A stretch of 64,000 bases of DNA from Hydrolagus colliei (lineage: Eukaryota), in contig CM068756.1 in assembly GCA_035084275.1 (NCBI GenBank), positions 14,260,001 through 14,324,000 on the forward strand, given 5' to 3'. The translations under genes and the position numbers were made by a program. Within the stretch, counting starts at the first letter, position 1, and the number at the start of each line of letters is the position of its first letter. A model generated the notes under the pieces. It did no database searches, was not told the DNA's origin, and saw nothing but the letters and a program-made list of their open reading frames with translations. Positions 1 to 64,000 of the stretch are shown here, piece after piece.

Positions 1-3000
1 TTAACATGGTCAACAATGAAGATGGTCAACACGATCACTACCAAGAAACAGAATATAAACCGTAAAATCATCATGTTCTCCGACATTCCACCATAATATC
101 CATTCCTCCCAGAAGCTAGAAAACAAATATCGGAATTAAAATCTATTGAATAATTAGACTGTGTTGGGAATATGTACAGTTTGTGAATTAATTTATTTTG
201 GAAGGTACAATGAGGTGGACGAATATTATGAATTTGTGTGATTGAAAACAACAGAGAACATGAATGTACAGATATGCTTCAGTAATACGATAGAGACACA
301 CTTATATATTATGGGATAGCCATTCCCCTGAGAATGTGTGCTCAGCTTCAAATACACCAGAGAGAATGGCTGTTCCAACCCGAGCCTTGGAGAGTTGAGC
401 ACCAACGTAATCAAAACTGATTCCTTTAGACATCTACTATCAAATCGAAAAGTCTGTAACACATCTCACAAACTATTTAGATTTTAAGTGCAGCGAGGAA
501 AAGAAGCCGAAGATTTTCCCCAACAAAGCCTCAGAATGTTGAATATATTGATAAATGATATTATTTGTGCTGTATTTGTGAAGATGTATCAGTGGAAAAG
601 TCCAGTTACTGGTTTCACCCCTAATTGCTGGTGGAGAGCTCAGGTCTATAGCACTTTGGGCGGGTTACCAAATAACAAGAAAATACAGTTTGAAGGAGAG
701 AGATATTTAGAAATTAATGAGAAAACAAGAAGATACACAGGTTTGAGATATTGCTTCGTTTCAAAGACTAAACATTTATAAAAACGCAATGTACGGCAGA
801 TGCTGGAAATCCGAAACAATCTGAACACTCAGCAGGTCAGGCAGCCTCTCTGGACAAAGGAAAAATGATTCAACATTTTGGATTCACGACCTTTCGTCTG
901 AACTGCGTTAATAAAATTTTGACTGCGTTAATAACTCCGGAAAAGAGATCTGTGATTGACTAACAACTGGGTTCCCACTTATTGCTGGAACGAAACACCC
1001 AATGTTTCGTCCTGCCCGGGAATCAAACCTGGGTCCCCCCTCGAGAGAGGCGAGTGCTCTAATCACTGAGATACACGACTCCACTGATACAAGAGATTCT
1101 GATGAATAATAATCCTAAAAGCAGCAAATTTGCCACACACAGTGTACCATAAATAGTCATGGCGTTAATAACCAATTTTACCTGCTGTGTTTATCAGCCA
1201 GAACAAAGGGAGGAAGAATCTTACTTCACGCTTCGAATAGTATCATGGCATCATTACATGCATAAATATCTGAAGTTAACAATGTGTTCAAACCCTTTGA
1301 ACACATTGTTAACTTTAGATATTTATGCATATAACATATGAATACTATTTCATTGTTAAACAAAATAACCAAAGTAAATATTACATCTAATCTCAATCTG
1401 TGCATTTTTTGTCATCAGAATTAGCAACAACAACAACAACAACTACAAAATTGCATCTGTAAAGCGCATTTTACAGCAAGAAGAGGTCCCAAGGTGCTGG
1501 ACCCGAACTGAAATTAGATGGAACTCAGAACTGAAAACAGCTGGATGTATTAGTTTACGGCAGCTGTAGCTAATGACATCTGGTTACCATTGCTCTTGAC
1601 TTTATTACTCAGGCGAGGGCGACACACAGAATACCAAAATGGACCATTGCTTATCAGAGGAACCCTCACAAAATACAATCCATAGATTGTAGAGCAAGAG
1701 ACTGCTGTACCTATTGACAGCTGATCACAGCGATGAAGCACAATCACTTGTTAATAAAAGGGGGAACATGACGGGATGGGAAGACATTTGATGCTGAAGT
1801 GTCCTGAGGTGTCCCGAGCGTTTGAAAACTATGCGGGTTCAGGATGCCACCACTTATTGGTTAGGTTTAACAAAATGTATGATTTATTCACTTAAAATGT
1901 TCTACATTCACACCTTATAATGTCGTTGATCACCACCATGCACAACCCCCTCATCACCATCTCAACACATTTATCTCCTATCAACTCTGGCATCGTTTCC
2001 TATCCCTGCAGGTCTCCCAGGAGAGAGAGCAAGTCACATTCCATCCCTCAAGTCACAGGCAGGTGACTGTTCCTGAGGGCTCTAACCTCAGCCTCTGCCC
2101 TTCACTATCTATGCTCTATCCACTTGGCGACATCATCCGTAGATATGTATGTCCACATGTATAAAGATGAAACCCAACTCTCCCATGTTCCTCCACACTC
2201 AACATCCATCATTAACCCAATTAGTACCAAACTTCAAGTCCTTGATTAGCTCTGACTTCCTTCAGCTGAACAACAATATCTCTCGGTCGGTTTGTATAGC
2301 GCCTTATACATCAAATATTTAATGTACATGCATTGACTGAAAAAGTGGTGGAGGCTGATTCGATAACAGCTTTTAAAAGAGAATTAGATCTTTATTTAGG
2401 GAGAACTGGTCTGTTAGGTTATGGGGAGAGATCGGGGCAGTGGGATTGAGTTGCTCTTTTCAAAGAGCCGGCACACACTAGATGGGCCAAATGGCCTCCT
2501 TTTGCGCCGTAAAATTCTATGATTCTATGAAATACAATGATTGATATTGTCACTATTATCTCATTATTGTCATCTCAAATTGCTTCAGATGATTGACTGA
2601 AAGCTGCTGTACAAATGTAATAATGTTGTTGGTTTTGTTTACGAATCAATGAAAATAAACATCCCTATGAGGTTTGAAATAACAACAGTCGACTTTTTAA
2701 AATTCGTTTAGGATCCTACCTGCTTTAGGTTTTGGGATTGTGTAGGTGGCAATAGCTCAATTCTTGATGCTGACTAGTTATGCATAAAAGGAGGAACATG
2801 GTGGGATGGAAAGACATTTGATGAATCAAGTGTCCTTTGCGGAAACTGAGATTTTGAAAGTCATTCAGCTTTAGGATATGTTGATAATATCGATAATCAA
2901 TAAGTACATAATATCGGTTTGGTTTAATGAAATGTTTGAGGATTCACATCAAATGTTCCACATTCCAACAGTGTAATGTATTTGATCAACATCTTGCACA

Positions 3001-4657
3001 ACCCCCTCATCACTAATCTCAACACATTTGTCTCCTATCAACTCTGGCATTGCTTCCTATCCCCACAGGTCTCCCGGGAGAGCAAGTCACATTCCATCCC
3101 TCAAGTCACAGGCAGGAGCTGCTGAACATTGACTGTTCCTCGGGTCTCTATCCTCAGCCTCTGCCCTTCACTATCTAGATGTTCCCACTTGGCGACAAAT
3201 CGCTTCAGAGGATTCAATGAAAGGCGTTGTACAAATACAACTTTGTTGTTGATGTTGTTTACAAATCAATGCGGCTAAACATCCCTATGAGAATTGAATT
3301 AACAACAGTTGGGTTTTTAAAACTCTTTTAGAATCTTACCTGCTTTAGGTTTTGAGATGGTGTAGGTGGCAATAGCTGAATTCTTGAGGGTGATGTGAGA
3401 CACCAGACAGGTATAAACAGATATGCTCTGGACAGACTGTGTGTCTTCAATAGAGCTAGAGACCATACAGAGTTCCCATGAGTCCTGCTTTTCTATGGTT
3501 ATTGTCTCTTCCACCATTATTCCTGATGTTGGTGTAATTTGGTTCTCATCTTTATACCATATGAGGGTGAAATCCTTTGGGTAAAACGCAGTAGTTTCAC
3601 ACACAATTGTCCGATGCTTAGTTGAATTCCTAGAGAAAATCCTCAGTGGAGTTGGGGGAACTGTAGAACAGATAATGGAGGAAACTCATATTAATTTTGA
3701 TCAATCAGCGGGAGAAACTTTATTTTAATTCTTTTGTTTGCAATCTCCCGATTCCTGAGTGCAAATGGAGGTTTATTTAGATTCACAAATATCCCTCTCA
3801 CAGCAGCAGAAGCTTCCTCCTGCTGTAATTACCCTTCGGTTTTTATCAATTAATGTTGATGCGTAATCGTTGTCTTACATATTATTACTATTATTGTTAT
3901 TGTGACTAAGATTATCAGGCGGAATTGATCACTGTGAACTCTCGATCAGAGGAGACAGAGGATCCCTGACAGGTGTGAGAACACTGTATTATTCTGGCTC
4001 AATTGGTAGCATTCTCGCATCTGAGTTAGAAGGATATGGGATCAAACTTGACATTGGGACTTGGAATTCACATAGTTGATGCGGAAACATTTGCTGCAAT
4101 GCACACTCACCCTGCACAGTTAAACGTGATCCAGGTCCTGTTCCAATTACTGATCCCTGACGGATCACTGAGCAGCGATAGACTCCAGAGTCCTGGAAAC
4201 TCACATTCAGGAACTGGAAGAAGCCGCTTCCTTTGCCTATCACACCAAATGTTTTCCTGCTGTCCGCCTGTGTGTCCAAGTAGCCGTCCTCACCCTCCTT
4301 CTCCCACTTCACCCCCTGTCCTGAACCGTGTTGAGAGGAGGGAAACATACAGAGGAGAGTCACGTTCATCCCTCCGATGAGTGTCACATGTTCGGGGCTT
4401 TGATATACTTTCACTGAAGAATCATCAGCAACTGTCAGAAAATAGAGTCAAACACTGATTTCACAGATAATACGCCGTGGACAAAGCAAGCGAGTAAAGA
4501 GAGTAAAAATTGAGTTAGTATACTGTATATGATAATAACACATGGAAACAGGCTTGTAGATATTTCATAGAAGAACTGAGTTATATAATAATAATAATAA
4601 AATACCTGTTGAAATAATATGTAAGACAGACAGGTACAGAAACACAACACTCCCCAT
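1..4657 (-). CDS. G1: non-rearranging VJ-C1 Ig-superfamily receptor with Arg-containing TM (NKp30/NCR3-like); 3' end runs off the window
   Basis: Exons: leader 4606-4657 (MGSVVFLYLSVLHIISTG), V 4111-4431, C1 3340-3660, TM 1-115 (ASGRNGYYGGMSENMMILRFIFCFLVVIVLTIFIVDHV..). All have AG/GT boundaries and phase-1 junctions. Canonical Ig C-W-C residues in both domains. Confidence 0.88.
920..1083 (-). mobile_element. Second tRNA-headed SINE-like element
   Basis: Minus strand GGAGTCGTGTATCTCAGTGATTAGAGCAC...GGTTTGATTCCCGGG (A/B boxes). The G2 paralog (15140-15792) is split by a later insertion. Confidence 0.6.
2336..2530 (+). mobile_element. Short 3' end of the same CR1 subfamily as 9790-11468
   Basis: Near-identical to the reverse complement of 9790-9990, with TTCTATGA tail. 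Confidence 0.85.
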
Positions 4658-5412: not shown

Positions 5413-7242
5413 GAGGAAAAGGCTAGCGAGGTTTAATGTGGGTCCATTACAGGCAGAGACCGGAGGAATTAGAATAGGGGACAAAGACATGGCAGAGTCA
5501 TTAAACAAGTATTTTTCTACAGTCTTCACCGTAGAAGATACTGGAAACATACCAAAAATAGAGGGGAACCAAGAAGACAATGCTAGCAAGCAACTTAGGG
5601 AGATTAACATCAGTAAAGAGATGGTTCTAGGTAAATTGTCGGGTCTTGAAACCGATAAATCCCCTGCACCGGATGGCCTGCATCCTAGAGTTTTAAAGGA
5701 GGTGGCTACTGAGATAGTGGATGGCATATCTATAATCTTCCAAAATTGTGTGGATACTGGAAAAATCCCCATTGATTGAAAGATTGCAAACGTAACTCCA
5801 CTATTTAAGAAGGGTGGGAGAGAAAATATGGGAATCTATAGACCAGTAAGTCTGACGTCAGTTGTAGGGAAAATTCTTGTGTCCTTAATAAAATACATAG
5901 TTATGGGATACCTTGAAGACCATAAAAAGATTAGGCAGAGTCAACATGGCTTTACAAAAGGGAAGTCATGCTTGACTAATCTTTTAGAATTTTTTGAGGA
6001 TGTATCCAGCAGGTTGGATAAGGGGGAACCAGTAGATGTGGTATATTTGGATTTTAGGAAGGCATTTGACAAGGTACCACAAAAAAGGCTGTTACTCAAG
6101 ATTAAGGCCCACGGGATTAATGGGAAAATATTAACATGGATAGAACAGTGGCTATCGGGTAGAAAGCAGAGTGTAGCGACAAACGGATCATTCTCGAATT
6201 GGCCGGATGTAACTAGTGGAGTGCCACAAGGATCAGTGCTTGGGCCTCAGCTATTTACTATTTACATCAATGATCTAGATGAGAACATTGAATGTAACGT
6301 GTCTAAATTCGCGGATGACACTAAACTAGGTAGCAGAGTGAGCTCTGAGGATGATGCAAAAAGATTGCAACAAGATATAGATAGGCTAGGGGAGTGGGCA
6401 AGTAGGTTGCAGATGGAATTCAATGTTAGCAAGTGTGAAATTATTCACCTTGGTAGCAAGAATAAAAGAATAGATTATTTTCTAGAGGGGGAGAAGTTAG
6501 ATAGTGTTAGTATTCAAAGGGATTTGGGTGTCCTTGTACACCAGTCCCAAAAAGCTAGTTTGCAGGTACAGCAAGCACTAAGAAGGCAAACGGCATGTGA
6601 GCGTTCATTTCAAAAGGTTTAGAGTACAAGAGTAGGGAAGTCTTGCTGCAACTGTATAGGGCTCTGGTGAGACCGCACCTAGAGTATTGTGTGCAGTTCT
6701 GGTCTCCTTATTTAAAAAAGGACATACTTGCCTTAGAGGGGGTGCAGCGTAGATTCACGAGGTTAGTTCTTGGGATGAGGGGACTGACCTATGAGGATAG
6801 GTTGAATAAACTAGGGCTGTATTCTCTAGAGTACAGAAGAATTAGGGGGGATCTTATTGAAACACATAAGATTCTTAAAGGGCTTGATAAAGTAGGCACT
6901 GAGGGACTGATTCCCTGGTAGGAGAATCTATAACCAGGGGTCACAGTCTTAAAATGAAGGGTCAGCCTTTTAGAACAGAGTTGAGGAAACATTTCTTCAC
7001 TCAAGGGTAGTGAATTTATGGAATTCATTACCCCAGAAGGCTGTAGATGCTCAGTCCTTGAACATTTTAAGGCTGAGACTGATAGATTTTTGAAAAATAG
7101 AGGGATTAGGGGATATGGGGATAAGGCATGTAATCAGAGTTAGGTGAGAAGATCAGCCATGATCTTGTTCAATGGCAGAGCAGGCTCGATGGGCCAAATG
7201 GCCTCCTCCTGCTCCTAATTCTTATGTTCTTATGTTCTTATA
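5413..7242 (+). mobile_element. 5'-truncated CR1-clade LINE (RT remnant, stop and frameshift)
   Basis: ORFs 5360-5779, 5828-6622, 6643-6921 with RPVSLTSVVGK, YLDFRKAFDKV, GVPQGSVLGP, FADD. (TTCTTATG)n 3' tail. Confidence 0.93.
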
Positions 7243-9789: not shown

Positions 9790-11468
9790 CATAGAATTTT
9801 ATAGATTCATAGAATTTTACGGCACAAAAGGAGGCCATTCAGCCCATCTAGTCTGTGCCGGCTCTTTGAAAAGAGTGATTCAATCCCACTGCCCTGCCCG
9901 CTCCCCATAGCCTAATAGACCTGTTCTCCCTAAATAAAGATCTAACTCCCTTTTAAAAGTTGTTATCGAATCAGCCTCCACCACCTTTTCAGGCAATGCA
10001 TTCCAGATTCGAACAACTCGCTGAGTGAAAAAATTTCTCCTCAGCTCCCCTCTACTTCGCCTTGAAACTATTTTAAATCTGTGACCACGAGTCACAGATT
10101 CACCCACGAGTGGAAATAGTTTTTCTCTATTTGCCCTGTCGAAACCCCTCATGATCTTATAAACCTCTATTAGGTCTCCCCTCAATCTTCTCTGCTCCAG
10201 AGAGAATAACCCTAGCCTATCTAGCCTCTCCTCATAGCTGAAGTCCCTCAATCCTGGCACCATCCTAGTAAATCTTCTTTGTACCCTTTCCAATGTCTTC
10301 ACATCCTTTCTGTAGTGTGGTGACCAGAATTGAACACAGTATTCCAGCTGAGGCCTCACCAAAGTCTTATAGAGGTTAGTCAGCACTTCCTGACTTTTGT
10401 ACTCTATACCCCTATTTATAAAGCCTAGTATCCCATATGCCTTCTTAACAGCCTTGTCTACCTGTCCTGCCACCTTCAACGAGTCACTGACACAAATCCC
10501 CAGGTCTCTCTGTTCCTTCACACCATTTAAAATTGTACTATCTAGCCTATATTGCCTCCCTTCATTTCTTCTCCCAAAGTGCATCACCTCACACTTCTCT
10601 GCATTAAACTTCATCTGCCATGTGTCTGCCCACTTTACCAATTTGTCTATATCCTCTTGCAGATGGCTACTATCCTCCTCACTATTTACTATTCTCCCTA
10701 ACTTAGTGTCATCTGCAAACTTGGAAACTGTACTCCGTACACCCAAGTCCAGATCATTGATGTAGATTACAAACAGCAATGGTCCCAAAACCGATCCCTG
10801 TGGCACACCACTGCTCACTTCCCTCCAATCTGAAAAACAACCGCTCACTACAACTCTCTGCTTTCTGTCTCGCAGCCAGTTGTGGATCCACGCTGCCACT
10901 GTCCCTTTAACGCCATGGGCCTTTAATTTCATAATAAGTCTCTCATGTGGCACTTTGTCAAATGCCTTTTGAAAGTCCATGTAAACTACATCAACTGCGC
11001 TACCATTATCCAACCATTCCGTTACCTCATCAAAAAATTCTATCAGATTTGTAAGGCAAGATTTGCCTTTAACAAATCCATGTTGACTGTCCTTCATTAG
11101 CCTATATCTTTCTAAGTGAAGATCTACCTTGTCTCTGATTATGGACTCTAGAAGTTTGCCCACTACCGACGTTAGACTGACTGGTCTGTAGTTACCAGGC
11201 TTGTCCTTCTGCCCCTTTTTATACAAGGGAGTAACATTAGCTATCCTCCAGTCCTCTGGCACGACCCCTGTGTCCAAGGAAGATTGAAAGATCGTGGCCA
11301 GAGTCCCTGCTATTTGCTCCCGTGCCTCACTTAGTAACCTAGGGTGCATCCCATCCGGACCAGGTGACTTATCCACCTTGAGCAACGTCAACCTTTGTAG
11401 AACTTCCTCTCTGGTTATAATTATTCTATCCATTTCTCCTACCCTCTCCTCTAATACCATGGCGTTGG
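9790..11468 (-). mobile_element. 5'-truncated CR1 LINE with uninterrupted RT/C-terminal ORF
   Basis: ORF 9880-11478 (532 aa) with SPGPDGMHP, DFQKAFDKVPH, GVPQGSVLGP, FADD, NFFTQRVV. ATAGAAT-type tail. Confidence 0.95.
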
Positions 11469-11890
11469 GAATGGTCATTGTAACACAGCCCTAGATTGCG
11501 CAATAGGCCACTGACTTGACAGTTAAGGTTGATCAATGATAAGTGCATGGGTAACCAAGAAAGTTTAATTGGAGAAAAGAAGAAGCAGGGGTTAGTTTCT
11601 TGGCGTTTTCTGAATCACAAAGAGTATAAATGAACTGTCATCGTGTAATATGTTTGATGAAGGAAAGGAACGATGCAGTGGAAAGTGATGTTTGTCCCTC
11701 TGGTGGCCATCAAGCAATCGGGGCTTCGTGTTATTTTGACTGCAAAGTTACCAGTAACTAAAAAAACCTCGGGCAGATTGTTTTGACCCTGATAACAAGC
11801 TGATCTGAAACAACGCTGCATAAATGCGTAGCCGTGTTAAACGTTTCTGTGTCTTTGACTTCCTGTCTTGGAGGGTTCAGGAAATTGAGT
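11469..11890 (-). pseudogene. Old divergent V-exon relic with promoter remnant; its 3' end is displaced to about 9745-9789 by a CR1 insertion
   Basis: Acceptor at 11758-11759, then VTGNFAVKITRSPDCLMATRGTNITFHCIVPFLHQ, stop and frameshifts, later ..LINLNCQVSGL.. (E/F-strand-like). Family ACTTCCTGT motif near 11857. Confidence 0.65.
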
Positions 11891-19620: not shown

Positions 19621-20454
19621 GTCTGAGTGTGGGTCTGATGAGCTGTAACACACGAACCTGGAGTGTTTGATGAAGAGTAGGCAGCTGTGACACTGACTTC
19701 CTGGTTCTTTGGGTTCTGGAAATGTGGCTGTTGTGGTTGATGTGATTTGAAATCAACTTCTACAATAAAATTATGAAAATATTAAATCTTCCTATTAATA
19801 GCAGAGAATGGCTAAACACATATCTAAACAAAGCACAAAAGAGTTCAGCTTCACTATTCAGTCAGTGGTGGTTTCTCTAACCAGAAATGTTGTTTTTTAA
19901 ACATGAACTCATCGACTTGCCTTGGAATCAACAGTGTCAGAAACAAGCCAATCTGGTGCAATGTTTCTGCTGATAGTTCTCTCTGTCCCCTATTGATAGA
20001 AAATAACCTTTCCCTCTAAAGCGCGGGGCCACCCTCTAAGATACCAAATTATCGTCCCATCTTAACATTACGCCTCCCATCCAAAGTCCTGGCAACTCAA
20101 CTTTGCTCGAACATGTTTCTCCACTGAGTCCTAGTAATCCAATTTCTACCCAAACCTGAGACAGAATAGTCAAGGAAACAATAGTATTCAATCTCTCTAT
20201 CTCTGTAACCGCAGCCTTCCATGTTTGTGTGTTCCTTCCTTTCCAAAGTCCTGGTCACTCAACTTTGCTCTCACTTTTTGCTCCATTCGGTTGTAGAACT
20301 CCTCAAGTGAAGTTTCTGGCCACAGCAGAGAAAGCCTTGGCAGAGTAACACTGATTTTCTGTCTGTTTGTCTGTCTGCAACCACAGTGCCTCTGCCTTCT
20401 TGTCCTCCTGGATGTTCTGCTGCTTTCAAAATTGTCGCTACTTGATGACTTGAT

Positions 20455-20805
20455 GGAGCTCCTGTGGCTCAGTGGTTAGAGCACTTGTCTTGCAAGCTGG
20501 GGGAAACCAAGCTGGGGAGCCCAGTGTTCGAATCCAGGCAGGTCAGGGCGAAACCTTGGGCAAGTTTCCTTACTCCACACGCCTAATAATAATCCCCCCC
20601 CAAAAAAAACCACAATAATAAAATTGGTCATTTCAATCCACGACTGTATGTGGGACACTGCTGTGTGCAATTGGCTGCCGCGATTCGCCCACAAATATAT
20701 ACAGTCAATTCACTTTACAGTATAGTCTGTGAAGCGCTTTGGGACATTGATAAGATGTGGAAAGTGCTATATCAAATGTAAGGATTATTATTATTATTAT
20801 TATTA
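20455..20805 (+). mobile_element. tRNA-derived SINE with L2-like 3' end
   Basis: A box TGGCTCAGTGG, B box GTTCGAATCC, core CAATTGGCTGCCGCG, (ATT)n tail. Recalls DeuSINE/SacSINE1-type 3' regions; not verified. Confidence 0.85.
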
Positions 20806-46159: not shown

Positions 46160-46183
46160 GAGACTGGTTTATAAAACTTGCTT

Positions 46184-46533: not shown

Positions 46534-47492
46534 TTACGTTGGTTCCCTGGAATCAGCGGCGGCTGCTTCTTCCTGGTTCTTCACGTGCAGCTCTTCATAC
46601 TCTGTATTGTTAACGTTAGTCAAATTTATCATGGCATAAACCGCCGGCTGATTATCTGCTCCGTGCATCATCTGTAAAACATAACATGATCACAACAACA
46701 CATTGTATTTGTAGAGCATCTTTCACGTCCCAGGGCGCTGAGAGATTGTTGTCTTCACTGTTCTGAAGATTGCTGTATAAGTATGCATCAGAAAGCCCAT
46801 AAGTTGAAAACATTCGGTAAGAAAAGTGAACATTTTATGTGTTATCAATTATCAATTACATGACACCAGGTATTTGAATGATACATTTAGGAGGCAAAAT
46901 TTAATGTAGGTAATGTATTTAAAATGTTCTTATTTATTTATGATAAACAGTACTGTTTCATTACAACAAATCTGTTTTTAGATTAAACATCCGCTGAAAT
47001 AATATTGGTAATTGTACCTTCTCTTGGCAATGTCTCCATCCCATCTGACTTCTGCGTGGGCCTTTGAAAGAAATTGAATAAATGCAGGATTTACTTTCGG
47101 TTATATTTTGATTTGACCAAGTGAAAAGCGTTTTGAAGATCATGAGCTGCCAAAGTCTGTTTTTCTACATATTTATGTAAAGTTGTCTTTGACTCTAATG
47201 TAAACCCAGGTGATAGAGTTACAGAAATCAGACAAGTACTAATTCATAACCCATCTTGCACTCATATTACTTTCAATGCATTTCCATCCACTGTCCCTGC
47301 TCTCTGGAACTCCAATCTGGAGTCCTTCGAATTCTATCTTTCCTGCACAACCTTCGAGATCTTTGAACATATTAAATCTTGAACTTGGCTACTCCAAACC
47401 ACTATTCCTTAATTCCTTCAGTTTTTCCTCAAAAGAGATTTGGTTGCCCTTGGGACGTCCTCCCGACGTGAAAGGCGCTCTATAAGTGTAAT

Positions 47493-50500: not shown

Positions 50501-51941
50501 GATGGGATCAAGCTCCACGTGCAGACTTGGAATTCACATAGTCTATGTTGAAATACCTACTCTAATGCAGTTCTTAGGGTGCATAAAATGAAAGGATTGT
50601 ATTATCTCAGCCTTTAGAGATTTTGATCAGGTAAACAGGGAAACAGTGAGTCTGGAGCAAGAGACTGTAAGCTAGAATCATTACCATGATAGAAAGTTTA
50701 ATTTTGATTTTACTGAGAGGCACCTGGGTCCCAAACAAAATAAAGGCTGAAGCAAAATCCATAACAGCTATTTAACTGAATTTTACAGTCATCTTTCCTT
50801 TGTCTTCTAGATGGATTTTAGATTACGAATGCAAATAACATGGATCAATTCTGTATGTAACCTGTGTAACATTAGAATTTATAAAACTATTTGTTAATTT
50901 GTGCTGAATTATATTATTTTGTGTTTTAGTTTGGCAGGGGTTACTTTTGATGTAATTTTCAAATACAGGTAGACCCCATTTAAAGTTGTTTTGGTCGACG
51001 TTGTTTCACTATTACGTTTCGGATACAGAGGGAACACACATCCATTTAACGTTGTGATGTTCACTGTTACATCGTTCTCCAGCGGGTGCTGCATTGGTGA
51101 GCGTAAGATGGCGTTAGGGCCTGGCCGTCAACAGAGTGACGAGGAGGCAGCAGTGAGTGAGTGAGCCATACAGGCAGTCAGGGAACGAGTGAGTGATCTA
51201 GGCAGGCAGTCGGGGAGTGGGTATAACGTGTTTTTTTAGAATTTTTTTAAAACGAAAAATGTCCAAGAACCTAATTCGAGTTTATACATTAAAAATGTGA
51301 AAAATGTAATCACTTAACGTCGTTTCGATTAAAGCTGCGCGTTTCAAGAACAATCCTACGACATTAAGCAAGGAAAATCTGTACTTTCGCTGTTCATTCA
51401 CTCACCCTGCACAGTTAAATGTGATCCAGGACCTGTTCCAATTCCTGATCCCTGACGGATCACTGAGCAGCGATAGACTCCAGAGTCCTGGAAACTCACA
51501 TTCAGGAACTGGAAGAAGCCGCTTCCTTTGCCTTTCACACCAAATGTTTTCCTGCTGTCTGCCTGTGTGTCCAAGTAGCCGTCCTCACCCTCCTTCTCCC
51601 ACTTCACCTCCTGTCCTGAATCTTGTTGAGTGAATGGAAAGATACAGTGGAAAGTGACGTTTGTCCCTCTGATGACAGTCACACGTTCGGGGATTTGAAT
51701 CACTTTCTCTGAAGAATTGATAGCAACTGTCAGAAAATAAAGTAAAACACTGATTTCTCAGACAATATGCCTTGGACAAAAGTAAGCGAGTAAATAGAGT
51801 ATAAAACGTACGTATAAATGATAAATGGCACAAGGAAACAAGCTTGCAAATATTTCGTAGAAGAACTGAGTTGTAGAATAATCATATACCTGTTGAAATA
51901 ATATGTAAGACAGCGAGGAACAGAAAGATGACCCTCCCCAT
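46534..51941 (-). CDS. G5: VJ-C1 receptor with uncharged TM and a cytoplasmic tail carrying two tyrosine motifs, 329 aa
   Basis: Leader 51890-51941 (MGRVIFLFLAVLHIISTG), V 51406-51726, C1 49817-50137, TM 47952-48065 (GSGNETCYLPWGVCAAVVFAFLVILIIIEKRCQLKKEN), 44-nt exon 47018-47061 (GPRRSQMGWRHCQEK), last exon 46534-46671 (MMHGADNQPAVYAMINLTNVNNTEYEELHVKNQEEAAAADSREPT*). Phases 1,1,1,1,0 give 990 nt. AATAAA signals follow. Confidence 0.85.
50966..51381. mobile_element. Tigger/pogo-like MITE in the G5 V-C1 intron
   Basis: TA|CAG...CTG|TA with imperfect TIRs. Absent from the paralogous G4 intron (37630-37665). Confidence 0.65.
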
Positions 51942-52401: not shown

Positions 52402-52453
52402 CTGTTGAAATAATATGTAAGACATACAGGTACAAAAAGACGACACTTTCCAT
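52402..52453 (-). other. Orphan duplicate leader exon upstream of G5
   Basis: 52 nt, ATG...ACAG|GT, encodes MESVVFLYLYVLHIISTG, same phase as the other leaders. Confidence 0.7.
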
Positions 52454-55400
52454 GTCTGACTCTGGCTCTGATGGGCTGTAACATGTGAATAATAATAATC
52501 TTTGCATTTGCTATAGCGCTTTTCACATCTTATCGACATCTCAAAGTGTTTCACAGAATATAACGTAAAGTGAACTGCCTATACCTGTGGGCGAAACGCG
52601 GGAGCCAACCGCGCACAGCAGTCTCCCACAAACAGCCATGGATTGAAATGACCAATTTTAATATTGTGTTTTTTTTGATGGATTATTATTCGGCGTGTGG
52701 AGTACGGAAACTTACCCAAGGCTTTGCCCTGATCTGCTTGGATTCGAACACAGGTCACGTGCTTTCAAGGCAAGTGCTCTAAACACTGACCTATAGGAGC
52801 TATAGGAGCGCCGTGGTCTGACAATGCAGTATACCCCCAGCATTGCCTTGGTGTGTGTGCGCTTAAATTCCTGACATGAGGCTTTATCCTGTTAACTCTG
52901 CAAGCCAAAGCCCGAGCCTTTAGGATGATCCTAGCTGGACAAGAAGCGGGAAAGCTCGCAGGACAGCAATATCAATGGAAAACTATGTGATTTTAGCTGG
53001 TTAGACTCCAGCAATACCCAGAGACAGAGCTCTAAAATTCATTATAAATGGACGCATGTCTTATAACCCTTTTGCACCTCCTAATTTAGACTTATTATTC
53101 ACCTTTTCCCTTCCGTATCTTATCCTCCACAGCTACAAGGTCACACTGTGCTCTCCTGCTATTCTCAACCATAAAGCCACAATCTTTCGAGGCCAGTTGA
53201 GACTAAACTAAAGCTAGAAAGTAATTACGGAACTTGTCGCTTCAGTTAGTAATTTGGGAATGTGTGCAATAGGGGGAATGCTTGCAGCAACTGACTATTA
53301 TGTGTCTGTGTGCATGTGCACGTACGCATAACTACCTATATGATCATTTTAGTTACCATATCCTCATAAAATTGCTCATAATTACTTCCTCATGAAGCTA
53401 ATGTGTTTTCTAATTTTATTGCAAAGCATCTATCATAACACTAATCCCTGAAAAGAAAGGAAATTGGTCATTTCAATCCAAGACTGTTGGTGGGACACTA
53501 TAGTGTGCCTGCCTGCCTGCCCACCTGCCCGTCCGCCCTCCAAGACCACAATGCCTCTGCCTGCTTGTCCTCCAAATGTTCTACTGCTTTCAAAATAGTC
53601 CACTGTCGTGACTTGACGACTTCTCTTCCCTCATCCATCTCCTTGGGCTGCCTGGCCACCTCCCATGTATCTAAGAACTGTATTCTTGTCCCCCTTACTT
53701 TTTCAACTCCATCCTCTTTCACTTGGTGATACTATCCACAGACAAGCGATTAAGTTTCATATTGATGTGAATGAAAGGCAACTCAACCTCTACTGTCGAT
53801 TCGAGATCTACTGGTGCAATATCCAATTCTGTGTCAAGACCTTGATGATCCCAGATTTTCTGTAAATTACTATTGATGAATCCCATCCACCTTGTCTTCT
53901 GCAAATATTTCCTTTTTTCTAGAATTTACTGTAAAGTGAACTGACTGTATAAGTGTGGGAAACACACAGCTACCAATTGTGCACACCCACGTGTCCCCAC
54001 AAATAGGAATAGAAGTCACAATGTGCTCTCCTCAACCATAAAACCACAATTTTTCAAGGCCAATTGAAACTAAACTAAAGTTTGGAAGTATTTACGGAAC
54101 TTGTCACTTCAGTTCCTAGTTTTGGAATGTGTGCAATAAAGGGGAACGCTTGCAGCAAATGACTATTGTGTGTGTGTGTGTGTGTGTGTGTGTGCACGTA
54201 CACATAACTACCTACAGGATCATTTTAGGAACCATATACGTTACATCCTCATAAAGCTAATATGTTTTCTAATTTTATTGCAAAGCATCTATCGTAACAC
54301 TAATCCCTGAAAAGAAAGTAAATTGTTCATTTCAATCCACGCCTGTTAGTGGGACACTATAGTGTGCAATTGATTGCTGTGCTTCATTTGCATATGTACA
54401 ATCAATTCACCTTGCCTACAATATACAAAGTGCTTTGAGACATCTAGAAGACATGATTTGCGCTAAATCAAATAATAGAATAATAATCATTATTAAATAT
54501 CATTAGTACATTGCTCAGGTCAGACCGCACCTTGAGTAATGCATAACAATGTGGTCACCTTGATGGTAAACATTAATGTCCTGTGCTCGATATATAATCT
54601 GAGAGTGCAAGACTCTTGTAATTTAATTATCCTGTGACATTTACAAACATAGCAGGACGATTGAGGTGTTAACGCTTATTTATTTCATGTTAGGTATATT
54701 GTTATACTGTTAGATGTATTGTAAGTAGATACACAAATGTTGAATGCAAAGCTTCAACCATTTCACTGCATTTGACGAATTGCAACACATCTTGTTGCCT
54801 CCCCTCCTCTCTGTTAGTGGTTGATATCCTCTCCCCCACAACAAGCCCCAGTTCAGACGAAAGTATAGAATTAAATGGTTGTTTGGTTGCCTTCCTAGGT
54901 CTGTAGTCTTTGACTATGGTATTGAATAAGTAGGGATTTGATGAGAAACTGTCAAGTACAAATAGTTAAAGGGACATAAAGGGACAGAGGCAGTGAAAAT
55001 CATATTTCCAATTGATATTCTGCCATCCACCAACATGAAAATATGTTACAGACCTGATTAGATTAATTCAACAAGAATTCCTACTTAAAGTACTATTGAT
55101 TAAAACATGCTGGGATTTGTTTGACACAAAGTCACAGGCCTAACTCGGATGGATTACAAGAAAGGTAAATTGTAGTTTACAACTAACAACTTAATTCAGT
55201 CAAGGGGAATAAATAGGTTCGTAATTCTGGAGGAATCATGTTCAGTTCATAATCCAACTCAATTTAAGCGCTGTCTTGGTGTGGGTTGAGATTTGTCCGG
55301 TGTCCTGGCAAATGATAATCATGATAAATTGGTGACACACTTTATATGGTTATAGCAAGTAGAGTCATTCCAAAGACAATGATTCGCAGCCGTGAAGCAT

Positions 55401-55486
55401 TTTAAAACGTTTGGAATTATAGGCTCCACAATGACAATTACTAAATTGGGATATTGATCACCCAACTGATTTGGTGATAAACTTAC

Positions 55487-56620
55487 CCGATCTTCCAGAT
55501 TGCCCGATCGAGTCAGGTTTCCCTTTGATCCTAAATGTGAATAAAATTTCCTGAATTAAATATTTACTCAATTTTAATACTAAAATAATGTAATTATCCT
55601 ACATTTCGGGATGAGTGAAATACAAATATCCGCCTGGATTATTTAGTCTCCCCCTGAAACTCCATGTCACTCATACTTTCCGAAATCCTTAACATTGTAG
55701 GAATTTTTTCCTTTGAATATTTTGAATCCCAAACTTGGCGATGACTAACCACCACTATTCCTTAATTTTTTAGTTTTTCCTCTTAAGCAGCTTGTAAGTT
55801 TCCTGCACGCTGGGCCTTCGTTTTTCTCCTGGGACTCTCAATAATAAAAACATATTTTTAATGTCACAATTTCAATGTAGTATTTCGCTGAATTCCATTA
55901 CAACAACAACAAAATAACATTTGTATAGCGCCATTCACGTCGGGAGGATGTTTACTGATAAACACACATCTGGCACTAGTCCCTGCATTTGTTTGACACC
56001 ATTCATCAGTACAGTTACTAACAAATGCACACAATTCATCGTATCATAAGGCAGTTGCAATACATTAAGTCAGATTTCTGACATTGAAGGTGGTTAAATG
56101 AGAAATTCTGGGATACTAACATTCACCACGTGAAATTGTTACAGTACTGAATCTGTTGCAATAACTACAAGTAATTTATAAGAACATAAGAATTAGGAGC
56201 AGGAGTAGGCCATTCGGCCCTTCGAGCCTGCTCCGCCATTCAATAAGATCATGGCTGATCTTCTGACCTAACTCTGATTACCTGCCCTATCCCCATATCC
56301 CCCAATCCCTCTATTTTAAAAAAAATCTATCAGTTTCAGCCTTGAAAATGTTCAAAGACTGAGCATCTACAGCCTTCTGGGGTAGTGAATTCCATAAATT
56401 TACTGAGGGTGAATGTGGGTTGTGAAATGTGGCTGTTGTGATTGATGTGATTTGAAACCCACCTTTGCAGTGAAATTGTGAAAATAATAATTATTCCCAT
56501 TAATAGCAGGGAAAGGATAAAAATGTATCTAAACATAAAATAATAGCGTTCAGCATTACTATCATGTTGGTGGTGCTTTCTCCATACTGAATTATTGTTT
56601 TAAGCATCAACTTTGCTTTG
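55487..56620 (-). pseudogene. psiB: ghost gene retaining promoter-like sequence and the 44-nt cytoplasmic exon only
   Basis: 56410-56620 is homologous to the upstream regions of the family (e.g. 19720-19950). 55487-55530 has a good acceptor and a GTAAGT donor (GSKGNLTRSGNLEDR). No leader, V, C1 or TM found. Confidence 0.6.
56178..56407 (-). mobile_element. CR1 3' fragment, related to 5413-7242
   Basis: ATAAGAACATAAGAA tail and matching 3' UTR. Confidence 0.85.
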
Positions 56621-59702: not shown

Positions 59703-62700
59703 TCACTCTGGAAAGGCGTCTGAAAGCGCTTGGCACTGTTGGTTAGCCACCGGAGCTGGAGATGGAAGCCGAGCCATCACATATGACTGTCTGATTTTAT
59801 TTGTCTCTATCTAATATGATATAAATTTATTCTCAAACTGTAAATATTTAAAGATTATCTTCAAGAATGTTCAGCCTCATGGATGTAGAGCTTATGAATA
59901 GGGACACTAATGCTAACATTTATTATGACAACCCAGTAACAGATATGGAAGTCATTACACTAATAATGTATATTGTTGACTGTTGTTCCAGATGCCTGGA
60001 GGTTTGGAGGAGATATCTTTATATCCACTGATTATTAGAGGATCCTCCAATACAACAAATGTTAATTCCCACAATCTAAACTGTCTGGTCCCGGTTACCA
60101 GCGGTTTCCTGTTCATTGATAATTTTATGGGCTACGCTATCAATACAATAATTGTCAATGAAACCACAATATTATTTTGAAACAAAGAATGCCTCCTTAC
60201 CTTTCAAGTTGTGAGATTTTAACATGGTCAACAATGAAGATGGTCAACACTATCACTACCAAGAAACAAGATATAAACCGTAAAATCATCATATTCTCCG
60301 ACATTCCACCATAACCTAGAAAACAAATATCGAAATTTAAAATGTTTACATGAAAATTTGCTGGATAACTAGGCTGTATTGGGAAAATACATACTTTCTT
60401 AATTAATTTCTATTGGAAGCTACAATGAGATGGAAATGATCAACTGTGAATTTATGTGATTGAAAACAACAGAGAATTATTGTGAACATCAATGCACAGA
60501 GAGTTTGTTAATGATGTTATAGAGACAGAGTTATATATTATATGGTAGCAGTTCCCCAGAGACGGTGTGCTTAACTTCAAATGTGCCAGAGAGAATGACT
60601 GTTTTTAAGAGCAGCAATTGTTGCTGTAAAGGAGAAGAAGCGAAAGATTTGCTCCAACAAGGCATCAGAAAATGAAATGGTTTGAGGAAGGAATCTTATT
60701 TGTGTTTTATTTGTGAACATGTAAAGTCGAATTACTGATTTGAAAACGAATTGCAGGTGGAGCGCTCAGGACTATTGCACTTTAGGCAGGTTAGTAAATA
60801 ACAAAACATACATATTGAAGACGAGAAATTTAATAACAAAACAAGAAGTTACTCAGATTTAAAATATTCTGCCTTTCAAAGACTAAATATTTATATATAT
60901 CTTATATGTATATGGCGTTTACAGTGGTAAACATTCTGCGTATGACTGTAAATTTGTTGCTTATATAAATGCAGATGCAATTTCCGGTAACAAAGTGTTT
61001 AAGAATAAAAGAAAGTGAGATAACTAGGCATCCTACCATCCAATTCTGTGTTGAATTTAGAAACTGTGTAGCTCGGAACAGTGGGAAGCTGGTGTCTGAT
61101 GGCAGACAGGAATAAACAGCTACGTTTTGTATAGTTTGTGTCTCTTCTATTTAGTCCGAAACTTCATAAAATCCGTTTGAATTATTTACTTTTTTGAAAT
61201 CTGTCCCCGATTTAACTGCCATCGTTATTCCCAATGAGGCCGACATCTCTCAATATCAGTTTAGGGCACTAAACCTTTGGAGATAGGCCAGACTGGGGGT
61301 AGGTTTGGGGCTAAAACAGTGCAGGATCCGTCCTTTTACAAGATGAATGAAACATTCTTAAATTGTGGCTAAGCCTCTCAGAAGCCGTGTGGAATCTTTC
61401 TCTTCTCATGGAATATTGTGGAATTCCTTCAAATAAATAAATTTATGCACATCCAAGTGGGATATTTGAAATGGAGATGGATAATAGGTTACGGGAATAT
61501 GAAAAGTGGCGGAGAAATTGATTGAACTTCTGCCATCATTCTGGAGCAACAATCAGCTGCATTTAAAAGTGTTTCCAGTCGGAGAGTGTCCCGAAGAAAA
61601 CAGTGGGGATTTCACTAAAATTAGACGGATGGAGTGATTTCTATATTGTTATTCTAATAAAATATTTTGAAGGCCTTAATAATCCCCGAAATGTGAATTT
61701 GACTAACAACTGGGTTCCTACTTATTGCAAGAGATTCTGATTAATAATCATCCTAACAGCAGCCAAATTTTCCACACAAAATGTACAGTACCATAAATAG
61801 TCATGAAGTGAATAACAAACTTTACCTGGGGGTTTCATTAGCCAGAACAAAGGAGGAAGAATCTTACTTCACTTTTCGAATAGTACCGCAACATCATTAA
61901 TGTACACCTGAACATGCCATAAGGATCTCAGTTTAATGTCCCATCCAAATAGCGGGAAGCCACAGACTGCTCCCCTAGCATTACACTAGATTGCCAGTGA
62001 CTTGGGACAATCTCGATACATGTGTTCAGAATAGATTAGTATATTACTAGACAGGGTAAACATTCTGGGTACGGAGGGATGTAAATAGTTGAAAGCAATG
62101 TTAACTTTAGACATTCATGAAAAATCTTTCAATTTAAGTATTAAGCAAAATAACCAGTGTGAATATTACGTCCAGTCTCAATCTGTGAATATCATTGTGA
62201 TCAGAAGTAACAACAAAACAAAATGACACCTGCCGTGAGGAGGACGTACCAAGGCACTGGACCTGTATTAAAATTACAATGAACTCAGAACGTAAAACAG
62301 CTTGATAATATGTCATTTAAGGCAGATGTAGCTGATGACATGTGTTTGAGTTTATTTTTTAATCATTGTTCTTGACTTTATTAGTCAGGCGAGGGTGACA
62401 CACAGAATACTACAATGGACCATTGCTTTTCAGAGGAACCCTCACAAAGTACAATCCATAAATTGTAGAGGAAGATGGCTTTACCTATTGACATCTGATC
62501 ACAGTGATGAAACACGCTCATTTGTTTTTAGTAAGAGGGGGGGAATATGATGGAATGAGAAGACATTTGATGCTGAAGTGTCCTGAGGTGTACCGAGGTT
62601 TTGAAAATTACGTGGGTTTAGGATTCCACCACTTATCGGTTAGGTTTAACAAAATATTTGATGATTCGCTTAAAATGTATGACCTTCAATTCAAATTGGA

Positions 62701-63970
62701 TACTGTAGTTTATCACCATCTTGTACCATGCCCTTCTCACTAATCTCAACACATGTGTCTCCTATCAACTCTGGCATTGCTTCCTATTGGAGCTCCTGTG
62801 GCTCAGTGGTTAGAGCACTTGTCTTGCAAGCTGGGGAGACCAAGCTGGGGAGACCTGTGTTCGAATCCAGGCAGGTCAGGGCAAAACCTTGGGCAAGTTT
62901 CCTTACTCCACACACCCAATAATAATCCCTCCAAAAAAACGCACAATAGTAAAATTGGTCATTTTTCAATACACGACTGTGTGTGGGACACTGCTGTGCG
63001 CAATTGGCTGCCGCAATTCACCCACAAATATATACAGTCAATTCACTTTACAGTATATTCTGTGAAGCGCTTTGGGACGTTGATAAAATGTGGAAAGCGC
63101 TATATCAAATGCAAGGATTATATATTTTTTATTCTTCCTATATGCAGGTCTCCTGGGAGAGCAAGTCACATTCCATCCCTCAAGTCATCGGCAGGAGCTG
63201 CCGAACATTGACTGTCCCTCATGGCTCCATCCTCAGCTCCTGACTACCTATATGATCTATCTACTTGGCGACATCATCTGTGGACATCTAAGTGCACATA
63301 TACGAAGATGAAACCCAACTCTCCCTTTTTCCACACACAACAACCATCATCGACCTGATTAGGTCCCAAACTTCAAGTCCCTGATGAGCTCTGACTTTCT
63401 TCAACTGAATAATAATAATCTCTGCATTTTATACGGCGCCTTATATATCAAATACAATTATTAATATCATTATATCTCGTCATTGCATTACAAATCCCTT
63501 CAGACGAATGAATGAAAGGCACTATACAAATATAATTTTGTTGTTGATATTGTTTACGAGGCAATGCAGCTAAACATCCCTACGAGATTTGAATAAACAA
63601 CAGTTGACTTTTTAAAATTTGGTTAGATTCTTACCTGCGTTAGGTTTTGGGATGGAATGTTTTGTGTCAGTGTAGGTGGCAATAGCTGCAGACTTCAGGC
63701 TGACGTGGAACACCAGACAAGTATAAACAGACGCTATCTGGACAGACTGTGTGTCTTCAATAGAGCTAGAGACCTTATAGAGTTCCCCAGAGTTCTGCTT
63801 TTCTATGGTTACTGTCTCTTCCACCTTGATTCCTGATGTTGGTGTAATTTCGTTCCCATCTTTATACCATATGAGGGTGAAATCCTTTGGGTAAAACGCG
63901 GTAGTTTCACACACAATTGTCCGATGCTGAGTAGAATTCCTAGAGAAAATCCTCAGTGGAGTTGGGGGAA
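59703..63970 (-). CDS. G6 (partial; leader and V lie beyond the window): C1 + Arg-TM + short tail of the same receptor family
   Basis: C1 63635-63970, TM 60201-60315 (GYGGMSENMMILRFISCFLVVIVLTIFIVDHVKISQLE), tail 59703-59790 (RQSYVMARLPSPAPVANQQCQALSDAFPE*). Confidence 0.85.
62789..63130 (+). mobile_element. tRNA-derived SINE, same family
   Basis: A and B boxes, flanked by a CTTCCTAT duplication inside an old L2 relic. Confidence 0.85.
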
Positions 63971-64000
63971 CTGTAGAACAGATAATGGAGGAAAATTATA

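Follow-up and report, generated by a model that had tools for sequence, protein, structure and literature searches.

Genes that carry a VJ domain joined to a C1 domain and do not rearrange (VJ-C1 genes) are the favoured models of the RAG transposon target at the origin of antigen receptors. Genes of the NCR3 family outside mammals may carry a C1 domain. Shark members of this family were reportedly published by Kinlein et al. 2021 (Immunogenetics 73:333). Passages of PMC12227049 and PMC10450919 cite that paper. UrIg and UrIg2 are non-rearranging, antibody-like shark genes that have been brought into the argument on antigen-receptor origin; they have several to many C domains, form Fc-like dimers and are reported in elasmobranchs only (PMC12227049). 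Among jawed vertebrates, no lineage has been sampled less for non-rearranging VJ-C1 genes than the holocephalans, which PMC10751288 calls data-deficient.

Here we analysed a 64,000-nt stretch of DNA from the holocephalan Hydrolagus colliei (the window). A sequence-only reading had described it as a cluster of receptor genes, and this observation was confirmed. We consider it probable that the window belongs to a larger tandem array of holocephalan genes, a multigene cluster evolving by birth and death, for type I membrane receptors paired as activating-type and inhibitory-type forms. Members of this receptor family and repeats make up its entire content.

Exon anatomy and domain types

All genes of the cluster (G1 to G6) lie on the minus strand, to which the coordinates below refer. 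Every exon junction was predicted from the sequence, and expression of the genes is presumed. The sequence-only reading had credited six genes with leader, V and C1 exons. This holds for G1 to G5, but G6 is represented within the window by C1 and transmembrane (TM) exons only, its leader and V exons lying beyond position 64000. At the opposite end, the TM exon of G1 is cut by position 1.

The leader exon is 52 nt long (MGSVVFLYLSVLHIIST) and is located at 4606-4657 in G1, where it ends in a phase-1 donor, 19569-19620 in G2, 27928-27979 in G3, 38145-38196 in G4 and 51890-51941 in G5. It is followed by a V exon of 321 nt at 4111-4431, 19083-19403, 27447-27767, 37669-37989 and 51406-51726 in the same five genes; the copies in the cluster are 86-95% identical at the nucleotide level, and the BC-loop/CDR1-like region of G3 is the most divergent. 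The exon ends with ...YRCSVIRQGS[VG]IGTGPGS[SRH]L[TI]V[QRC], followed by G|GTGAGT. The V region and a J-like G strand (IGTGPGSxLxV) are thus contained in one open reading frame and one exon with its own splice donor, as had been proposed. RSS-like sites were searched for throughout the 64 kb window and none was found, against 1.4 expected in shuffled sequences. As V and J share a single exon and the window contains no RSS, the domain is a germline-joined, non-rearranging VJ domain.

The C1 exon, of 321 or 336 nt, is present in all six genes (3340-3660 in G1, 18282-18602 in G2, 26032-26367 in G3, 36416-36736 in G4, 49817-50137 in G5 and 63635-63970 in G6), and the 336 nt of G3 include an in-frame 15-nt extension. 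The C1-set hallmarks noted earlier were recovered, with CETTAFYP in G1, G2, G5 and G6, CETTTFYP in G3, and the variants CETTGCNP and LVFHF in G4. The Trp and the motif Y-x-C-L-x-x-H are kept in all six. Both V and C1 exons are flanked by AG/GT sites in phase 1-1. In total, eleven intact Ig-domain reading frames of 107-112 codons were found, diverging by 5-20%; their splice sites are conserved and none carries a frameshift, so that the cluster is not a product of chance. Values of dN/dS among paralogues were 0.7-1.0 in both V and C1, which fits either the rapid evolution of immune receptors or relaxed constraint.

Pfam assigned the two domains to the C1-set (E=2.4e-9) and the V-set (E=1e-7). 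In sequence, the best PDB matches of the C1 exon were IgM C-mu2, SIRP-alpha d2, UrIg2, MHC II beta2 and Ig CL. In structure, an AF2 model (pLDDT 85.6) most closely matched TCR beta chains and Ig light chains, whose identity to the family sequence is only 16-23%; the TCR/Ig-light-chain-like ectodomain of the earlier description was thereby borne out. A model of the V domain by itself matched VJ-type V domains including that of NKp30 (3noi, TMq 0.75).

Two 3' modules and their relics

Downstream of G1, G2, G3, G4 and G6 we found a near-identical terminal exon encoding a TM helix with an Arg residue (..MMILRFI[SF]CFLVVIVLTIFIVDH..). It is located at 1-115 in G1 (ASGRNGYYGGMSENMMILRFIFCFLVVIVLTIFIVDHV.., cut by the window start), 14400-14503 in G2 (the terminal coding exon, ending in ..DHVKT and a stop codon, with the tail shortened by an 8-bp deletion), 25810-25928 in G3 (GCCGMSESMMILRFIFCFLVVIVLTIFIVDHVKISQLER and a stop codon, with C1 only ~100 nt upstream), 34419-34591 in G4 and 60197-60315 in G6 (..DHVKISQLER and a stop codon). 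The cytoplasmic tail comprises 0-10 residues, with 18 more in G4, where a deletion has removed the usual stop, so that the claim of an Arg-TM with a short or absent tail in these five genes was upheld. The five copies are 95-99% identical at the nucleotide level, compared with 86-95% for the V exons, and no other segment of the gene unit is as well conserved. By analogy with NKp30, the Arg in the outer third of the helix would pair with the acidic residue of an ITAM adaptor, predicted to be of the FcR-gamma/CD3-zeta type. Through such pairing, G1 to G4 and G6 would act as activating receptors, and their putative ligand is possibly B7H6-like.

G5 carries a different module. Its uncharged TM exon (47952-48065, GSGNETCYLPWGVCAAVVFAFLVILIIIEKRCQLKKEN, phase 1-1), 62% identical in amino acids to the TM exon of P0005 from Callorhinchus milii, is followed by a mini-exon of 44 nt (47018-47061, GPRRSQMGWRHCQEK) with a weak donor, GTACAA, and by the last coding exon (46534-46671, MMHGADNQPAVYAMINLTNVNNTEYEELHVKNQEEAAAADSREPT and a stop codon). 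All three exons have homologues in the C. milii proteins P0005 and P0058, the mini-exon corresponding to GPRRNQEGSSHYEEQ in P0058, and one of the tail exons found in the C. milii homologues is missing from G5. The tyrosine tail is in frame only when the mini-exon is included. Judged against the canonical ITIM pattern [SIVL]xYxx[ILV], neither of its two tyrosines is canonical: AVYAMI has Ala at position -2 and is not an ITIM, and TEYEEL (TxYxxL) is only ITSM/ITIM-like. The proposed uncharged TM with a tyrosine tail was thus located exon by exon, and G5 may be an inhibitory or modulatory partner acting via SHP-type phosphatases, with degenerate motifs. Its ectodomain is close to that of G2 (91.3% nucleotide identity in V and 90.7% in C1), and in the V tree G5 is nested inside the activating genes (100/98). 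One cluster therefore holds near-identical ectodomains on an Arg-TM or on an uncharged TM with a tyrosine tail, in agreement with the paired receptor system that had been suggested.

Relics of the inhibitory-type module are also present. psiA (54876-56168), downstream of G6, is the remnant of an inhibitory 3' module; it is colinear with the TM-to-tail introns of a C. milii inhibitory gene and includes a mini-exon copy at 55531-55488, and its tail exon is eroded. The pseudogene psiB (38600-39934) keeps its leader intact (39934-39883), its V exon breaks off after NVSF (39719-39485), and a copy of the mini-exon lies at 38643-38600. The earlier assignment of both to the inhibitory type stands as far as the mini-exons go, but only fragments of the module remain and no tyrosine tail survives in either. 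In the C1-to-TM intron of G2, a copy of the uncharged TM exon of the inhibitory type has decayed (17179-17270): its acceptor is kept, its helix is disrupted and it has no donor. Other relics are a C1 exon with stop codons in the C1-to-TM intron of G1 (2718-2858), a similar one after the C1 exon of G6 (61085-61183), and the 5' part of a V exon in intergenic sequence (11658-11757, with a second copy at 31132-31177), which also occurs upstream of a C. milii gene (L001:7605-7745). Because relics of the inhibitory TM exon and mini-exon sit inside and between activating genes, we infer that the activating units derive from inhibitory-type units, which may have acquired or retained a downstream Arg-TM exon. 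That these fossil exons show how the switch happened is, in our estimate, likelier than the separate-lineage origin discussed below.

Both modules are conserved across cartilaginous fish

The closest relatives of the cluster genes were C. milii proteins with 65-79% identity, and family members were found in shark, ray and chimaera genomes, with automatic names such as SIRP-like, Ig-lambda-like and tapasin-related-like. The annotated elasmobranch proteins fall into a class with an Arg-TM and no ITIM and a class with an uncharged TM and 1-5 ITIM-like motifs. Such motifs, again 1-5, occur in C. milii and shark homologues, with canonical examples in P0005 of C. milii. Conserved copies of the Arg-TM exon were found in C. 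milii (L001:758-862; L002:741-845 and 15494-15607), and annotated proteins of sharks also carry it, for example P0110 of Carcharodon (..RFILAFLVILILTTIIVEH..), so that its conservation extends from chimaeras to sharks. The C. milii cluster on scaffold MU249845.1 (15.22-15.29 Mb) has the same alternating activating/inhibitory layout as the window. The family is thus already publicly annotated across cartilaginous fish, with both receptor classes among shark proteins, and the novelty of the cluster had been overstated: its genes are the chimaera members of a large family already present in cartilaginous-fish genomes. We assume that this family is most probably the one reportedly published from sharks as the "NCR3 family" (Kinlein et al. 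2021).

At the C. milii loci that were fetched, the Arg-TM exon is absent from the gene models. Models such as P0001 and P0004 stop just past C1, and secreted read-through forms of this type are possible; one further model fuses two adjacent genes. We rate the view that the activating arm of the family is missing from current holocephalan gene models above the separate-lineage origin. The practical value of the analysis lies in annotation, namely the Arg-TM exons missed at these loci and the fused model. Conceptually, the cluster extends a known story by one example and leaves it unchanged: an NKp30-like VJ domain is set on a C1 domain in a chimaera, in a family that presumably already worked as an activating/inhibitory pair.

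A specific link of the family to NKp30 is plausible. An hhalign comparison of the family V domain with human NKp30 (sequence verified against 3PV6_B) gave 30% identity over 94 columns, a probability of 96% and a score of 51.6; the V domain of PD-L1 scored 64.5. In the V tree, the family, NKp30, CTLA4, PD-L1 and B7H6 form a 92/94 clade as a polytomy, with SIRP, PD-1, TCR and Ig outside. Constraining the family to group with NKp30 costs 3.3 lnL units versus 11 for SIRP, and AU tests on the V-domain placement reject no alternative.

The higher PD-L1 score, the polytomy and the outcome of the AU tests would also suit a separate cartilaginous-fish VJ-C1 lineage, orthologous to neither NCR3 nor SIRP, which would have kept the Arg-TM exon and a multi-ITIM module since before the chimaera-shark split. 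It could be an offshoot of the B7/CD28 superfamily, or a relic in its own right of the VJ-C1 precursor that predated RAG. Some members are automatically named 'NCR3 ligand 1-like' or 'CD276 homolog', and when 1.84 billion representatives were searched by HMM, all family-type proteins that were named or inspected among the best 150 matches came from cartilaginous fish, the remainder being giant multi-Ig proteins. If true, an independent surviving relative of the antigen-receptor precursor would already have been a paired signalling system. However, the PD-L1 match ends ahead of the G strand, and the J-like form of that strand, C-x-V-x3-G-x3-G-T-G-x-G-[TS]-x-L-x-V, occurs with identical spacing in the family and in human NKp30 but not in the V domains of B7 proteins. 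The combination of an Arg-TM and a short tail also agrees with the NKp30 design, and the published shark NCR3-family genes (Kinlein et al. 2021) are presumably this very family. We regard a separate lineage as unlikely.

We hold it to be improbable that most copies in the window are non-functional duplicates in neutral drift, the paired system being a birth-and-death graveyard. The dN/dS values, the clearly decayed sequences (psiA and psiB as well as the fragments of C1 and V exons) and the defects of single genes (variant C1 and tail extension in G4, tail deletion in G2, degenerate tail in G5) point in that direction. On the other hand, in 11 of the 11 V and C1 exons the frame is open, the canonical cysteines and the Trp are retained and the splice sites are AG/GT, and their sole length change is the in-frame 15-nt extension, whereas neighbouring introns contain many indels. 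The highest conservation of all is that of the Arg-TM exon, and the true relics carry stop codons and truncations, so that decay can be recognised where it occurred.

A cartilaginous-fish counterpart of SIRP, that is, a SIRP-alpha/beta-type paired system and not an NKp30-like one, would account for homologues named 'tyrosine-protein phosphatase non-receptor type substrate 1-like' and 'SIRP beta-1-like', for the match of the C1 exon to SIRP-alpha d2 (E=1.2e-7) and for the good fit of the V-only model to SIRP-alpha D1. Shark tails with many tyrosines (xxYAxLDL ... TEYAEL) resemble the SIRP-alpha tail, but ITIM/ITSM motifs of such form are generic to many inhibitory receptors. Grouping the family with SIRP-alpha is not rejected (AU p=0.15), yet SIRP-alpha D1 (sequence verified against PDB) falls outside the clade of the family and NKp30, and forcing SIRP in carries the higher of the two constraint costs. 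Each gene has one C1 exon, against the V-C1-C1 order of SIRP, other C1-like pieces being relics with stop codons, and the Arg of the activating forms lies near the outer end of the helix, unlike the mid-helix Lys of SIRP-beta. We give this possibility little credence.

An identity as rearranging genes of Ig light chains or TCR, or as Ig clusters joined in the germline like those known in sharks ('immunoglobulin lambda-1 light chain-like'), has virtually no probability despite the fold and the Ig-type source names, the J-like strand having no FGxG Phe, Ig and TCR V domains lying outside the family clade at the low identity given above, and rearranging identity being refuted by the lack of RSS in the window and by receptor-type 3' exons (TM Arg or tyrosine tail).

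Comparison with known systems

Ig light chains and TCR chains share with the cluster genes the V+C1 ectodomain, the best structural matches, the phase 1-1 exons and the leader/V/C layout. They differ in that V and J are here fused in the germline, with no RSS and no FGxG Phe, and that signalling would proceed by the gene's own TM Arg or tyrosine tail. UrIg and UrIg2 also have a non-rearranging VJ exon followed by C1-type domains in cartilaginous fish, and the C1 exon weakly matches UrIg2 (E=6.7e-7). UrIg and UrIg2, however, have three or more C1-type domains after VJ, whereas the cluster genes have a single C1 and then a TM exon. With KIR, LILR, NITR and Xenopus CEACAM-type clusters the chimaera genes share tandem birth-and-death, relic exons, fast-evolving ectodomains and activating members that look derived from inhibitory ones; those systems use C2/I-set or V-only domains and have no VJ-C1 ectodomain.

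SIRP-alpha and SIRP-beta likewise have a VJ-like V domain followed by C1-set domains, and place inhibitory (multi-ITIM) and activating (charged TM) forms on near-identical ectodomains. The differences are one C1 domain, not two, and a TM Arg, not Lys; in the best tree, moreover, SIRP-alpha D1 does not fall within the family clade. Common to the cluster and NKp30 are a non-rearranging VJ-type V domain in a single exon, an F-G segment of the same spacing as in the human protein (YxCxVxxxGxxxGTGxG[TS]xLxV) and, in the activating forms, an Arg in the outer TM helix with a short tail, the adaptor pairing being presumed here. As in the shark NCR3 family, the genes form a multigene family in cartilaginous fish. 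Mammalian NKp30 is single-copy and has no C1 domain, whereas the chimaera cluster has a C1-set exon in all six genes, and an inhibitory partner.

The receptor array and its ectodomains

Motif scans and self-tblastn across the 64-kb window, which has ~40% GC and zero N runs, identified a tandem array of five V exons and six C1 exons on the minus strand. Exon borders were set by aligning paralogues. The leader exon (52 nt, MGSVVFLYLSVLHIIST) ends in a phase-1 donor, the V exon (321 nt) runs from TTTTCTGACAG to CTGTGCAGG followed by GTGAGT, and the C1 exon (321 nt; 336 nt in G3 and G6) runs from TCTGTTCTACAG to GCAG followed by GTAAG. All exon phases were 1-1, typical of Ig-superfamily domain exons. 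The V exons are located on the minus strand at 4431-4111 (G1), 19403-19083 (G2), 27767-27447 (G3), 37989-37669 (G4) and 51726-51406 (G5). The only parts of G6 in the window are its C1 exon (63970-63635, minus strand) and TM exon. The numbering G1 to G6 used for the six genes in the sequence-only reading agrees with their ascending order on the plus strand.

That reading had proposed a germline VJ strand within the V exon together with a C1-set domain, and both were borne out. The G strand, IGTGPGS[SRH]L[TI]V, lies in the same exon and reading frame as the rest of the V domain, forming a single ORF, and Pfam assigned the two exons to V-set (E=1e-7) and C1-set (E=2.4e-9, 37.9 bits, cutoff 21). 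Heptamer-12/23-nonamer signals, with mismatches allowed, were found nowhere across the 64-kb window, and the genes are therefore non-rearranging. The best relatives of the C1 exon among solved structures were IgM C-mu2, SIRP-alpha domain 2, UrIg2, MHC class II beta2, Ig CL and TAPBPR. An AlphaFold model of G2 (pLDDT 85.6), built with 38 sequences of the family (cartilaginous fish receptors with a germline VJ-type V and one C1-set domain) as input, consisted of two beta-sandwiches and a TM helix; in the PDB, Foldseek matched it best to TCR beta and Ig light chains, with identities of 16-23%. When the V domain was modelled by itself (pLDDT 88.4), the matches were shark vNAR, CD79b, SIRP-alpha D1, TCR V-beta, lambda V domains and NKp30 (3noi; 23% identity, TMq 0.75). 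Obtained with a predicted structure, these matches are the set of VJ-type V domains.

Several other elements were observed in the window. LINE-type reverse-transcriptase ORFs were present between the receptor genes at 9883-11490 (minus), 5780-6619 (plus) and 22969-23808 (plus), one with an open frame of 536 aa (RVT_1, E=1e-35). An interspersed repeat of 260-350 bp, probably a SINE, occurs in at least 10 copies in both orientations with up to 94% identity (20454-20807, 30281-30632, 62788-63133, 48968-49274, 52488-52793, 39037-39291 and others), and also in the loci from Callorhinchus milii examined below (82-90% identity). Purine-rich low-complexity tandem repeats, translating to GGREG/GRQ-type strings, were found at 29700-30130 and 31390-31750.

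The two 3' modules

In agreement with the proposal that G1-G4 and G6 carry an Arg-TM with a short or absent tail, the corresponding exon was found after each of the five. It follows TTTGTTTTCTAG and encodes G[YC][GC]GMSE[NS]MMILRFI[SF]CFL[VI]VIVLTIFIVDHV, with the Arg in the outer third of the predicted TM helix. Nucleotide identity among copies was 95-99% in this exon, compared with 86-95% in the V exons and ~87% in the flanking intron. The frame terminates at KISQLER and TAA in G3 and G6, an 8-bp deletion makes G2 end at DHVKT, and a deletion in G4 adds 18 residues. We considered whether the GTAAG after the exon is a splice donor leading to further tail exons. This was rejected, and the Arg-TM exon is more likely terminal as judged from its sequence, because the same bases supply the in-frame TAA of G3 and G6, the deletions in G2 and G4 would shift the phase, and the following ~90 nt are conserved in a UTR-like manner.

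G5 lacks an Arg-TM exon. Probing with the tails of homologues from C. milii and Heterodontus, we located three 3' exons on the minus strand, confirming the uncharged TM and tyrosine tail attributed to this gene: a TM exon (48065-47952), a mini-exon of 44 nt (47061-47018, GPRRSQMGWRHCQEK) found by local alignment, and a last exon (46671-46534). The joined exons encode an open 329-aa protein with the C-terminus MMHGADNQPAVYAMINLTNVNNTEYEELHVKNQEEAAAADSREPT, and omitting the mini-exon leads to a stop at once. The C. milii protein P0058 mirrors the junction of mini-exon and tail, with GPRRNQEGSSHYEEQ joined to MMHGAKNEPVAYDSLDF. Neither tyrosine motif of G5 is a canonical ITIM: AVYAMI carries Ala at -2, and TEYEEL resembles an ITSM. 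The inhibitory gene of C. milii has a tail exon 1 that was sought in G5 and in the decayed unit psiA, and was absent or eroded.

Relics of inhibitory-type units exist as had been claimed, but a tyrosine tail is retained in none of them. Colinearity with the introns between TM and tail in the inhibitory gene of C. milii was seen for psiA (56168-54876, minus), which keeps a mini-exon copy at 55531-55488 and whose tail exon is eroded. In psiB (39934-38600, minus), the leader is intact, the V exon breaks off after NVSF, and a copy of the mini-exon persists. The C1-to-TM intron of G2 contains a decayed exon for the inhibitory TM (17270-17179, minus), and in both G1 and G6 the C1 exon is followed by a C1 relic with stops.

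Membrane-proximal cysteines are present in G3 (GCCGMSE, 25928-25810) and G5 (NETCYLPWGVC, 48065-47952) and absent in G2, G4 and G6; they might permit disulfide-linked dimers in some members only. An additional, intact leader-like exon (MESVVFLYLYVLHIIST; 52402-52453, minus), with an ATG and a GT donor, was found 512 bp upstream of the G5 leader; it may serve as an alternative first exon or be the leftover of a lost gene. On the 3' side of G5, from ~370 bp downstream of its stop, a 2.6-kb segment is duplicated head to tail (40963-43562 and 43562-46160, 99.4% identity). Its ORFs had no Pfam match, and the repeat either arose by duplication very recently or is an artefact of the assembly.

Evolution of the cluster and its relatives in cartilaginous fish

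In the ML tree, the five V domains of the window formed one clade (100/98), sister to the C. milii proteins P0001 and P0005 (100/99), with the inhibitory G5 placed within the activating genes. Judged from the sequences, this nesting is a signature of paired receptors. Together with the two 3' modules, it supports the interpretation of the cluster as paired VJ-C1 receptors. The gene models establish a predicted VJ-C1 ectodomain, Arg-TM activating-type forms and an uncharged-TM partner with a tyrosine tail; pairing of the Arg-TM forms with ITAM adaptors, SHP recruitment and a B7H6-like ligand are what we infer.

All 11 domain exons keep open frames, cysteines, Trp and splice sites amid introns full of indels, which is evidence against wholesale pseudogenisation. 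dN/dS was 0.7-1.0 in V and C1. The V exons of G1-G5 are mosaic, as the first 45 codons (A and B strands, BC loop; dS 0.25, dN 0.22) are ~3 times more diverged in both site classes than the other 61 (C' to J-like strand; dS 0.086, dN 0.061). This pattern suggests gene conversion or homogenisation of the 3' half (F-G/J), or halves of different age.

The top database matches of the window proteins were C. milii proteins (65-79% identity), and the collection searched contained none of the window's own proteins. Word-indexed protein searches returned cartilaginous fish proteins only, under automatic names, and no match named NKp30 or NCR3. Two C. milii loci, L001 and L002 (MU249845.1, 15.22-15.29 Mb), were colinear with the window units, introns included, at 72-84% nucleotide identity. 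With identity not exceeding 84% over 300 bp or more, the possibility that the window is the fetched C. milii region itself was ruled out; it stems from a different holocephalan or is a diverged block of this cluster. In L002, an activating gene with V at 10233, C1 at 11140 and Arg-TM at 15494 precedes an inhibitory gene with V, C1, TM, mini-exon and two tail exons, an alternation as in the window. None of the three Arg-TM exons (L001:758-862, L002:741-845 and L002:15494-15607) is included in any called gene. The NCBI model P0008 ('SIRP-like', 489 aa; L002 = MU249845.1:15247272-15286562) fuses two adjacent genes and skips L002:15494-15607, and P0005 leaves out a C1 exon that is intact (L001:11140-11463).

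Profile searches and name look-ups showed that the family is present in sharks, rays and chimaeras, automatically named SIRP-like, Ig lambda-1 light chain-like, tapasin-related-like, CD276 homolog or NCR3 ligand 1-like. A scan of 64 family proteins distinguished a class with a TM Arg and no ITIM (Carcharodon P0110, Scyliorhinus P0183/P0184; TM motif RF[IV]L[AG]FLVILIL), a class in which an uncharged TM is combined with 1-5 ITIM-like motifs, and models in which no TM could be recognised. Public annotation therefore already includes both receptor classes, and novelty is what the sequence-only reading overstates. As the Arg-TM class occurs in shark proteins, its TM exon has been conserved between chimaeras and sharks.

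Affiliation with NKp30 and other known systems

The family V profile aligned with human NKp30, whose ectodomain sequence was confirmed as identical to PDB 3PV6_B, over 94 columns with 30% identity and a probability of 96%, including an ungapped F-G segment (YVCRVEVLGLGVGTGNGTRLVV versus YRCSVIRQGSVIGTGPGSSLTV). Ten V domains served as hhalign controls (three of them, NKp30, SIRP-alpha and PD-L1, with sequences confirmed against the PDB). PD-L1 V scored above NKp30 but without the G strand, and PD-1, SIRP-alpha and TCR beta scored slightly below. NKp30 was not among the top 60 PDB sequence matches of the V domain or profile, a list dominated by multi-Ig proteins. The ML tree placed the family, NKp30, CTLA4, PD-L1 and B7H6 in one clade (92/94), with SIRP-alpha, PD-1, TCR and Ig outside. 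AU tests rejected none of the groupings of the family with NKp30 (p=0.29), SIRP-alpha (p=0.15, 11 lnL worse) or PD-L1 (p=0.44). As hhalign, tree and AU tests gave no clean separation, the resemblance to NKp30 rests on the VJ strand and Arg-TM design, not on phylogeny. In these predicted features, an NKp30-like nature of the family is supported.

The NCR3 family of sharks was reportedly described by Kinlein et al. in 2021, and the family of the window is probably the same one. A description of this holocephalan cluster was not found in the literature searched. In sharks, NCR3/NKp30 has been treated as a VJ gene that is linked to the MHC and does not rearrange, with nurse-shark NCR3 genes cited as MT914154-61 (PMC12227049), and NKp30 and UrIg have been grouped as descendants, without rearrangement, of a VJ-C1 precursor (PMC10751288). 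Unlike the window genes, UrIg and UrIg2 have many C domains, and they are reported from elasmobranchs only (PMC12227049). The cluster adds a holocephalan member to a family already known widely among cartilaginous fish, and is not a new kind of system.
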